From Magallana gigas (Eukaryota), in assembly GCF_963853765.1 (NCBI RefSeq), contig NC_088858.1, positions 5,766,001 to 5,830,000 of the forward strand: DNA of 64,000 nt, read 5' to 3'. Positions 26,451 to 29,197 of the stretch are shown here, one piece after another (position 1 is the stretch's first letter; the number at the start of each line of letters is the position of its first letter). The position numbers and the translations under genes were made by a program. Below the pieces are notes generated by a model. It ran no database searches. It saw only the letters and a list, made by a program, of their open reading frames with translations, and was not told the origin of the DNA.

Positions 26451-29197
26451 ATGGTTGTAGTGACCTATACTAGGACAGAGTGTGGCGTTGACTTTAAGAA
26501 TCACGACATAACATTGGCTGTCCACAACATGGAAGACATAATACACGGACACCCAAAGAACTTTCAGATTAATCTGGGCTTCCGGTATGAAGAAGATTAC
26601 CTATATTGTGAAGACATGCGTGTTTGTGATTTATTGAATTTAAAGGATGTGTCGTCTCCAGTTTATGTGTACAGCAAGAAACAAATTGAGGCAAATATCA
26701 ACAAATACAAGACAGCCATGAAGAATTCAGGACGTAACATTCAGCTTAGTTACTCCGTGAAGGCCAACATGAATCCCTCTATTCTGGAGTTGATGAGGAA
26801 CCACGGCTTGTTTCTGACCTTGGTCAGTGGCCATGAACTTCGTCTAGCTCTTGACCTTGGACAAGAACCTGGGAAGATTGTCTTTAATGGGAACGGCAAG
26901 ATGAATTGGGAGGTAGATCTTGCCTGTAGATCGGGCGTCCTTCTGAACGTGGACAGTATCTTCAATATGAGACAGACCATAGATGTCTGCAAAGCGGGGG
27001 GATATGTGGCAAATGTGTTGTTCAGAATAAATCCGGACATAAACCCGGTATATTGTTTGCTCATCTTTTGGAACCAATTACCATAATCCCAATCTGAAAA
27101 GTGTCAAGGTTTCTGAGAAAAGAAGTGTAAAGGACAATTTTAACTTTCTCTTTAGAATGTTCACGGATATGTATCGACTGGTCAAGAGGGATCAAAATTT
27201 GGAATCTCTGCTGATGAGCTTGAGGAGGTTCTGGAAATGGCGACAACGTTCGAGAAAATCCGAGTAGTCGGCCTGCATTGTCATATTGGTTCCACTATAA
27301 GAGAGCCGGAGAAATTCAAGTCAGTTTTTTTTTCCTATACAAGTGTTGTTTTAAATTCGTTTGATTTAGCCCCCTGTGTAATAACATTAAATTTCAGACA
27401 GAGTACACGTGTACTTGTGGACCTTTTTAATAAGCTAAGAAGCCGCTTCCCTGATTTGTACGTCTTGAATCTTGGCGGAGGATTATCAATTCCATACAAA
27501 TCTCAGGTTTAAATTTTGTGAAGATACTCATTAAACTTTAATTACATTAGAAATATTAATTAATCCACATACAAAATTAACATTCATTTAACAACTATTA
27601 CGATAAATAGAATTTAAAACCAGATTATGTTGTTGCATTGTCTTAGATATCACTACCACAAAAATGCAAACAGGTGGTTCAGTGCGAAATCGACAAGAAC
27701 GATGATCAAGAGATAGCAAGATTATATGACAATCTTCTCACATCAAAGTAAGTTAATCTACTGTTGTAATATGTTAAAATTTATCATAGTTCCATCATCC
27801 ATTGATAAGATTAACGCCAAACTGTTTTAGGTTAACTCTTTCCACCTTCCTTGAAGCAATTAAACCTCTTCCTCGAGGAAAAGAGATATTTCTTAAACTA
27901 CAGGAGCAGGTTCCTTCTGAGGTGAGCTATAAAGCTTCTTATAAATATCACACAAACAATAGCAGCTAATGGTCAATGAAAATGGTTGAAAAAACCTGCG
28001 TATATCTTGTTTTATTTGGGAGCTATTTCGTAAATTAAGGTTCTGTATTCGTAAATGTGATTTTTTAAAATTATATATGTATGCTAACAATAGGACAAGA
28101 ATCAAACAAAGTTGATGCAGATTTTGCAATCTTTCAAGCAGTGTCTTGTTCCCGAACCAAACGATTTGCTTAGCTCTATCAGCGATATCATACCACCGGA
28201 AGCTAAAGTCATTCTGGAACCTGGACGTTCATTGGTCGGAAATTCTGCTATTCTGTTGTCACGTGTTCTAGGAACAAAATTATCCAAAAAGAAAAAGTAA
28301 AATATTAGATTTATTAACTTGATGAAAAATGACATATCAATTAAGAAACTTACAAGATACTTCAGAGGAAATAAGTATAAAAATCCTGTATCGTTCCAGT
28401 TTCATTGTAATAGATGGTGCAATGACAGAGGTAATTCGGCCGTGTCTATATGGTGCCTATCACCATGTCGAGTTAGCAGAACCTAGCAGAGCCGCTAATC
28501 TCCAAACCGCCAGCGACCAATCAAAATTGGTTTGGGACGTTGTTGGTCCTGTATGCGAAAGTGCTGATTTTATTGGAAAGGTTAAAAAAATAATTTACAG
28601 TCACAGTACATTCATAAAACTAGCACAATATCAATCTAATTCAATTTTAGAACAGTTCATTATTTGATTAGTTGATCATAAAGTTGCAGTAAATTATAGA
28701 AACAGTACAAAAGGTGCTTGAAAATGATTGCTGCTAAAAATAAACACTTTAACATAAATAATTAAAAATAAAATGAAATTTAGTCGAAATACTTACAAAT
28801 AAGTATCTTCTTACTTCAAGTTGTTAAAAAATACACGTACAATAGTATAAAGGTAAAGAAGACACCATGTGTGAACTTTGTAGGATCGGCTATTATTGAC
28901 ACCACATGAAGGTTGCAGCATTGCAGTGTTTGACACTGGCGCTTATTGCAGCAGCATGGGGTCAAACTACAACATGAGGGTAGGTAATTTCCATACTGAA
29001 GGTAGGTGATTTCCTGCAAGATGTCATTTCACGGAGAGTTTCCTTCAGCGACCGTAGATATTGAGATATTGTTTTGATCACAGGTACGACCCGCGGAGTT
29101 GCTTATTGATGGTGAGAAGGTGAAGGTCATACGTAGGAGCGAGACTTTCGAGGACATGATGAAATTATACACGAACTACTACTGTTTTTCGCAATAA
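26451..29197 (+). CDS. lysA: Diaminopimelate decarboxylase (plant-type LysA), 9 exons, ~542 aa
   Basis: PLP-lysine [75 protein letters not shown] and IRRSETF are all recovered in order across GT-AG introns. Confidence 0.93.

Follow-up and report, generated by a model that had tools for sequence, protein, structure and literature searches.

Structure and Transcription of the Oyster lysA Gene

A gene for a LysA-type diaminopimelate decarboxylase (DAPDC, EC 4.1.1.20) was analyzed in the Pacific oyster, Magallana gigas. It lies in a stretch of 64,000 nucleotides (contig NC_088858.1, positions 5,766,001 to 5,830,000 of the forward strand), which is called the window in the following, which contains no N, and to which all coordinates refer. 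The gene occupies positions 26451-29197 on the plus strand and consists of nine exons and eight introns (Table 1). A single reading frame runs from an ATG at 26451 to the stop codon at 29195-29197, and an in-frame TAA is located directly 5' of this ATG.

The exon borders were verified with RNA aligned to positions 26340-29500, i.e., raw stranded poly(A) reads (X20, X21) and RNA contigs (X4, X1), one of which is labelled "oyster metagenome". All eight introns have GT..AG borders, and each of them was found joined in poly(A) RNA reads. The first mates of the stranded reads were on the minus strand, showing that the RNA stems from the plus strand, as is expected for libraries of the dUTP type. 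Two acceptors that had been chosen from the sequence only, at 27674 and 28094, were replaced by the acceptors of the RNA joints, at 27647 and 28142. In addition, the RNA runs contained a fraction of 0.49-0.55 of the sampled words of the stretch, near the share of the exons (1608 of 2747 bases); the five best holders of these words, which are of unstated kind and were taken as DNA, contained 0.97-0.99 of them. A preliminary description, made from the sequence alone, had proposed a real, intact DAPDC gene with introns, and the single frame, the RNA-joined introns and the observed transcription confirm this proposal.

With the RNA-based exons, the product has 535 amino acids when counted from the ATG at 26451 and 509 amino acids when counted from Met27. 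Met27 (26529) is probably the conserved start, because the transcripts of a congener and the start of the Saccostrea protein agree on it. The congener transcripts (L002/L003, encoding a protein that is 89% identical) contain an upstream stop and no ATG matching 26451, and Saccostrea LysA starts at the equivalent of Met27. A rare joint from 27319 to 27647, which omits exon 3, was seen only in the RNA contigs of X4. The respective isoform is probably non-productive, since the frame shifts and meets a stop codon.

Some further observations were made at the gene. Intron 7 (28581-28883) has the donor GTTAAA and was covered by X21 reads at a depth of 2.5-3.2. The same intron is retained in the congener transcripts L002/L003 (L002:1448-1579), where the open reading frame (ORF) then ends with GKVN and a stop codon. 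Splicing of intron 7 may thus be inefficient or regulated. A few X21 reads had the opposite orientation (first mate on the plus strand, depth at most 2); they covered positions 27612-27929, i.e., exon 4, intron 4 and exon 5, and may represent a weak antisense transcript. If the transcript begins as far 5' as the X4 contig suggests, it includes three short upstream ORFs with ATGs at 26388, 26407 and 26432 (26388-26450). A palindromic element of about 590 bp, which resembles a miniature inverted-repeat transposable element, is present at 25742-26328, about 120 bp 5' of the lysA ATG. Its outer arms have a length of 113 nt and are 96% complementary, and two weaker pairs of arms are nested inside.

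Table 1. Exons, sequence motifs and signals of the oyster lysA gene (positions in the window).
Feature	Position	Strand	Remarks
Met27 start codon (probable)	26529..26531	+	conserved in congener and Saccostrea; 509-amino-acid product
Exon 1	26451..27047	+	N-terminal part of the PLP-binding beta/alpha barrel; PF02784 6e-17; TIGR01048 106 bits; joint 27047/27156 in RNA
SYSVKAN with PLP lysine K104	26748-26768	+	exon 1
Exon 2	27156..27319	+	barrel; Pfam and TIGR01048 matches; RNA joint
HCHIGS	27276-27293	+	exon 2
Exon 3	27398..27506	+	barrel; TIGR01048 match; RNA joint
LGGGL phosphate loop	27471-27485	+	exon 3
Exon 4	27647..27747	+	first insert cassette exon, amino acids 291-324; acceptor from RNA joints
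Exon 5	27831..27921	+	second insert cassette exon, amino acids 325-354; RNA joint
Exon 6	28142..28296	+	last barrel helix and strand; TIGR01048 270-301; acceptor from RNA joints
EPGR	28217-28228	+	exon 6
Exon 7	28400..28580	+	PF00278 1.3e-11; lysA model 55.9 bits; aligns to 6n2a
Specificity helix (RPxLY)	28434-28466	+	exon 7
GPVCES catalytic loop	28545-28562	+	exon 7
Exon 8	28884..28979	+	TIGR01048 match; RNA joint
DTGAY	28932-28946	+	exon 8
SNYN	28962-28973	+	exon 8
Exon 9	29084..29197	+	C-terminal strand and stop codon; TIGR01048 match; RNA joint
Poly(A) signals ATTAAA, AATAAA	29200, 29227	+	3' of exon 9

Family Identity and Active Site

The searches for family, structure and fold were performed with pieces of the oyster exons and with the whole orthologue of Saccostrea (P0001), in place of the spliced oyster protein. 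The two-domain architecture of the family was present, with PF02784 on exons 1-3 and PF00278 on exon 7. The exon pieces matched TIGR01048, the equivalog model of lysA, in a colinear fashion at model positions 9-153 (106.4 bits), 156-208 (54.2), 212-244 (18.3), 270-301 (25.9), 304-355 (55.9), 356-387 (28.5) and 389-415 (18.0). Such a series of ordered sequence matches across positions 9-415 is far beyond chance. The rough sum is about 307 bits, and the cut-off for a whole protein is 297.9 bits. All whole orthologues exceeded this cut-off: the values were 371.8 bits for Saccostrea, 345.3 for Pecten, 377.2 for Lingula, 397.2 for amphioxus, 407 for Ptychodera, 400 for Huso, 320 for Macrobrachium and 414 for Ephydatia. 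They did not reach the cut-off of any NCBIfam family other than lysA.

The closest solved structures are those of the DAPDCs of Arabidopsis. Exon 1 matched 6n2f with an E-value of 1.2e-32, while the next organism followed at 5.6e-18, and the match of exon 7, aligned to 6n2a, was 2e-13. The AlphaFold model of the Saccostrea orthologue had a mean predicted local distance difference test value (pLDDT) of 92.6 and a predicted template modeling score (pTM) of 0.90. Its best fold match was 6N2F, with a template modeling (TM) score of 0.93 by target and an identity of 36%; bacterial and archaeal DAPDCs came next, and the TM scores against solved DAPDCs ranged from 0.87 to 0.93 by target. The resemblance to plant-type LysA that had been noticed in the preliminary description therefore holds for sequence and fold alike, and it is also seen in the phylogenetic tree, where the plant-type clade has a support of 100/100 (see below).

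Two other family assignments were considered and rejected. The first was an identity similar to ornithine decarboxylase (ODC). The NCBIfam hits contained no ODC model, speA reached at most 66 bits, and the specificity helix carries an Arg at the place where an Asp marks the ODC type of fold III decarboxylases. No ODC chain was among the top 50 fold matches; the sole ODC-like entry, the arginine decarboxylase of a Chlorella virus (2nv9), was the last of them and was 17% identical. The second was DokD, the D-ornithine/D-lysine decarboxylase. The orthologues scored 147-201 bits on NF052544, which has a cut-off of 700, exon 7 had no match to this model, and the DokD fold matches were only 20-21% identical.

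Fourteen positions of the active site were tracked, namely the Lys that binds pyridoxal 5'-phosphate (PLP), the His of HxGS, the three Gly of the GGG loop, Glu and Arg of EPGR, Arg and Tyr of RPxLY, the Cys-Glu-Ser of the catalytic loop, the Asp preceding GAY and the Tyr of GAY. In oyster LysA all 14 PLP-binding, catalytic and diaminopimelate (DAP)-binding positions are kept, and each of the motifs named in the preliminary description (PLP lysine, HIGS, EPGR, RPxLY, CES) was found. The residues at the PLP site are K104, H242, G280-282, E380 and Y487. The DAP-specific residues are R383, R419, Y423, C458, E459 and S460, which are kept in nearly all named animal orthologues. The departures were Cys instead of Ser in CES in two scallops and in amphioxus, Thr instead of Asp before GAY in the prawn, and a gap in the paddlefish. 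A different picture was obtained for a second paralogue of hemichordates (P0225 of Ptychodera, P0038 of Glandiceps). It has lost the PLP Lys (replaced by Gln), one Gly of GGG (replaced by Glu), the Arg of EPGR and the catalytic Cys, and by its sequence it looks like a conserved pseudoenzyme.

The oyster gene itself is under purifying selection, as indicated by the ratio of nonsynonymous to synonymous substitutions (dN/dS). This ratio was 0.34 in the comparison with the congener (dS 0.19) and 0.10 in the comparison with Saccostrea, for which dS is saturated.

The specificity-helix Arg binds the carboxylate of DAP, and the amine of the side chain is bound by the acidic neighbor of the catalytic Cys; in relatives with other substrates, exactly these two residues are replaced (PMC7857480). 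The remaining DAP-specific residues were assigned roles as presumed from DAPDC structures. Because the residues of the pocket are kept in the oyster protein and are replaced in relatives with other substrates, the specificity for DAP appears to be unchanged.

The conservation of the pocket also bears on the possibility that the fold and the decarboxylation at the D-centre have been retained for a new substrate that is available in animals. This could be a D-amino acid, an analogue of DAP (meso-lanthionine, for example) or the peptide-bound DAP of muropeptides. A change of this kind has precedents, since the same clade of the superfamily gave rise to decarboxylases for D-Orn/D-Lys, for citryl-ornithine and for glutamyl-ACP (PMC7857480). 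It would also fit with the moderate constraint (dN/dS of 0.34 against the congener) and with the conserved extra helical subdomain of molluscs and brachiopods described below, and animals are not known to make DAP. We nevertheless regard a new substrate as unlikely. Nearly all named animal orthologues retain the two Arg, the Tyr and the Glu by which DAP is gripped at its distal carboxylate and amino group, and it is exactly these residues that were replaced in the known relatives with new substrates (PMC7857480). Furthermore, exon 7 matched the lysA model and not the DokD model, and the orthologues passed only the lysA cut-off.

A Two-Exon Insert in Molluscs and Brachiopods

In the alignment, molluscs, including a chiton, and Lingula have 40-80 additional residues that follow the GGG loop and precede the last helix of the barrel. 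The insert is lacking in deuterostomes, in Owenia, in the sponge, in plants and in bacteria, and only a remnant is present in Ruditapes. In the oyster it corresponds exactly to exons 4 and 5, which together have 192 nt (101 + 91), are in frame and encode 64 amino acids (291-354). The respective pairs of exons have 98 + 106 nt in Pecten and 128 + 94 nt in Lingula. The sum is always in frame, and the encoded inserts have lengths of 64-74 amino acids. The position is also always the same, i.e., the site at which deuterostomes carry one phase-0 intron, and the positions of the introns at the insert exons are identical in Saccostrea, Pecten and Lingula. Based on this position, the frame and the shared placement of the introns, two exons were recruited within an ancient intron prior to the divergence of molluscs and brachiopods. 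The insert is a clean example of a protein subdomain that was born within an ancestral intron.

Exons 4 and 5 did not match any family model of Pfam or NCBIfam. In the model of the Saccostrea protein the insert is predicted to form four helices, with pLDDT values of about 78-92. It is less conserved than the core, with an identity to Saccostrea of 31% versus 70%. Between the congeners the insert is 94% identical and has a dN/dS of 0.11. No joint that skips both exons 4 and 5 was found in the oyster RNA examined.

Evolutionary Origin, Distribution and Neighboring Genes

The preliminary description had mentioned that lysA-like genes occur in some other animals, which was correct and turned out to be an understatement. 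Among molluscs, named orthologues were found in oysters, scallops, clams, Solemya, seven gastropods and a chiton. Elsewhere, they were found in the brachiopod Lingula, the annelid Owenia, two hemichordates, amphioxus, a prawn, sturgeons, a paddlefish and the sponge Ephydatia.

The phylogeny with plant, algal and bacterial LysA that had been suggested was calculated as a maximum-likelihood tree (LG+C20, 69 rows). The protein of the window grouped with oysters with a support of 100/100, within Bivalvia with 96/92 and within Mollusca with 100/94. All animal sequences fell into the clade of plant-type LysA (support 100/100), which also contains plants, algae and some members of Chloroflexi and Poribacteria, and outside of which typical bacterial LysA is found. 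The family and fold comparisons showed the protein to be of the LysA type and not ODC-like. The deeper backbone of the tree was weakly supported. In an approximately unbiased (AU) test the monophyly of bilaterian LysA was not rejected (p = 0.33).

As a second line of evidence, gene structures were rebuilt from the genomic loci, and the positions and phases of the introns were compared. All eight introns of the oyster gene are matched in position and phase in each of Saccostrea, Pecten and Lingula. Five of the eight are also matched in amphioxus and Ptychodera, and only about 0.04 coincidences are expected by chance among about 1350 possible sites. For the plant Drosera, at most one intron was nearly coincident (column 244, phase 0, versus column 243, phase 0, in animals). 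Two animal genes did not fit into the pattern. LysA of Huso huso (L006) has three introns, none of which is at a position used by other animals, and LysA of Ephydatia (L007) is intronless and branches close to the red algae. For the copies of sturgeon and sponge, histories separate from that of the bilaterian gene are possible.

The genes around lysA are animal genes, namely Jiraiya, a CUB gene and a tandem family with KY-like immunoglobulin domains. The order CUB (minus), lysA (plus), KY-like (plus) is common to the window and to Saccostrea cucullata. The KY-like tandem family (PF23265, E-values down to 6e-50) is located downstream of lysA, from 29509 on, with ORFs at 30501-31658, 37580-38491, 44033-44827, 56319-56939 and 61966-62961.

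These results also bear on an origin by contamination with bacterial or algal DNA or by a recent horizontal transfer into oysters. In favor of such an origin, plant-type LysA is the closest match of the protein, and a coral DAPDC has been listed as a transfer from algae with chlorophyll c (PMC4878875). An origin of this kind has, in our judgement, next to no chance of being correct for the oyster gene. The eight introns are spliceosomal and confirmed by RNA, and the GC content is 0.43 in the exons versus 0.28 in the introns. The neighbors are animal genes in conserved synteny, the tree follows the phylogeny of molluscs, and five introns are common to the oyster and deuterostomes. Contamination and recent transfer are thus refuted by introns, synteny and tree, in agreement with the preliminary description, which had already excluded bacterial contamination.

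Taken together, shared introns, tree and synteny argue that lysA was present with introns in the bilaterian ancestor and reached the oyster by descent. On these comparisons, oyster lysA is a vertically inherited gene that is at least as old as the bilaterian ancestor. A transfer from an alga or a bacterium prior to the origin of bilaterians is possible. The ancient vertical inheritance and the insert of molluscs and brachiopods are additions to the preliminary description.

Proposed Function and Significance

We consider it probable, with moderate confidence, that oyster LysA is a plant-type meso-DAP decarboxylase of PLP fold type III, which would perform a one-step salvage of lysine from bacterial meso-DAP; this reading is based on the sequence and on the analogy to known enzymes. 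Free meso-DAP would lose the carboxyl group at its D-centre, and L-lysine would be formed. The enzyme would act as a homodimer, like its relatives, and it is probably cytosolic, because no targeting peptide is evident. The DAP would be supplied by the peptidoglycan of ingested or resident bacteria. Animals are not known to make DAP. Bacterial peptidoglycan is the proposed source because animals, including sponges, have been reported in comparative surveys to be lysine auxotrophs without a DAP pathway (PMC3287585).

Several points weigh against a salvage of lysine by oyster LysA. The dN/dS of 0.34 against the congener represents only a moderate constraint. The expression looks low, since the depth was only 1-8 when 1% of very large runs was sampled. 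The insert could alter the regulation or the partners of the enzyme. Lastly, DAP is a minor part of the bacterial mass, and by our own estimate the nutritional gain may be small.

The enzyme could instead have a role in immunity or signaling. It would destroy free DAP or DAP-type fragments of peptidoglycan, converting a signal of the DAP type into one of the Lys type, and would thereby tune the sensing of Gram-negative bacteria by PGRP or NOD-like proteins. Circumstantial points are in line with such a role: the D-centre of DAP is free in stem peptides that are not cross-linked, and the gene is kept mainly in animals that are constantly exposed to bacteria. The conserved residues, however, include those that grip the free carboxylate and amine of the L-centre, and in muropeptides these groups are amide-bonded. 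The N-terminus, read directly, also lacks a sequence resembling a signal peptide. An immune role is thus very unlikely in our view.

Lysine could also be made de novo, with LysA as the last step of a complete DAP pathway that the host encodes by itself or, in the manner of mealybugs and whiteflies, shares with a symbiont. Pacific oysters are not known to have an obligate nutritional endosymbiont, and we hold a complete or shared pathway to be highly improbable. The surveys mentioned above, which report animals including sponges to be without the DAP pathway, also speak against it (PMC3287585). In its favor, transferred lysA, dapF and dapB operate in Hemiptera in concert with the symbionts (PMC4943190). 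Furthermore, DAP-pathway genes of choanoflagellates, including lysA, have been flagged as possible transfers, and the same paper states that orthologues of its candidates of amino-acid metabolism exist in sponges and cnidarians (PMC7971027).

The salvage of lysine from bacterial DAP can be extended to a wider proposal, which is plausible but falls short of probable and is offered tentatively from the sequence comparisons. The bilaterian ancestor would have had a working DAPDC, which would have been kept by many aquatic animals (molluscs, brachiopods, annelids, hemichordates, amphioxus, perhaps prawns and sturgeons). In these animals lysine would be only conditionally essential, and the insert of molluscs and brachiopods may regulate the enzyme or dock it to a partner.

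Textbooks and comparative surveys describe animals as being without any DAP route to lysine (e.g., PMC3287585). The gene is important because the final enzyme of this route, its active site untouched, has persisted under selection since the bilaterian ancestor in many mostly aquatic animals that eat bacteria. Because the DAPDC is intact, expressed and inherited, oysters may make some of their lysine from the bacteria they eat. If it is active, the enzyme would be a direct, host-encoded link between the turnover of bacterial cell walls and the lysine supply of an animal. This would have a bearing on the nutrition of bivalves, on aquaculture feeds and on the survival of "lost" biosynthetic genes as single steps, as well as on the isotope tracing of amino-acid sources, for which lysine serves as a "source" amino acid.

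No study of the animal DAPDC family was found in the literature searched (DAPDC in combination with invertebrate, Crassostrea, cnidaria/sponge and auxotrophy). Animal DAPDCs are mentioned there for Hemiptera, as recently transferred genes (PMC4943190), and for a coral, in a table of transfers (PMC4878875), and a crab transcriptome mentions LYSA once (PMC12070891). Several orthologues already have the database name "diaminopimelate decarboxylase, chloroplastic-like". The intron-based proof of the bilaterian antiquity and the two-exon insert look unreported so far.

Comparison with Known Systems

The animal entries with the database name given above include those of Mizuhopecten yessoensis (XP_021371277), Pecten maximus and Lingula anatina, which are orthologues of the oyster gene with identities of 43-64%, and that of Polyodon spathula, which belongs to the sturgeon group and may be an orthologue. 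In contrast to the gene analyzed here, these entries are database names only.

The known enzymes that are most similar to oyster LysA are DAPDC1 and DAPDC2 of Arabidopsis (6N2A, 6N2F). They are the best match in sequence as well as in fold, their PLP-binding, catalytic and DAP-binding residues are identical, and they belong to the same 100/100 clade. In contrast, the Arabidopsis enzymes are located in the chloroplast, while the oyster protein has no plastid transit peptide, and only the oyster protein has the helical insert of 64 amino acids, encoded by two exons, after the GGG loop. The intron positions of plants and animals also differ, with the exception of the one near-coincidence in Drosera. 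Furthermore, the plant enzyme is the end of a complete pathway, whereas the animal enzyme appears to stand alone.

DokD (6N2H and others) has the fold, the superfamily clade and the action at a D-centre in common with oyster LysA. It differs in the low identity, in the scores on NF052544, which are far below the cut-off, and in the lack of a match for the exon of the specificity helix.

The nuclear lysA genes of the Hemiptera Bemisia tabaci and Planococcus citri are a further example of an animal lysA used for lysine production (table in PMC4943190). In this case the genes are recent acquisitions from bacteria (Planctomycetes or Alphaproteobacteria). They function jointly with dapF, dapB and the pathway of an endosymbiont, and they are restricted to single lineages of insects. 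The oyster gene, in contrast, is ancient, rich in introns and bilaterian-wide.

The model for the proposed function in the oyster is the DAPDC of trypanosomatids (Crithidia and relatives), which have kept the end of the DAP pathway and lack its other steps. In trypanosomatids that retain just the last or the last two genes, DAP can replace lysine for growth in defined medium, and it is incorporated as lysine (PMC3846528). Their DAPDC has a separate origin, since it clusters with Actinobacteria and is regarded as horizontally transferred, and the organisms are unicellular parasites. Its activity was shown experimentally, while the function of the oyster enzyme as a salvage enzyme for bacterial DAP is inferred.

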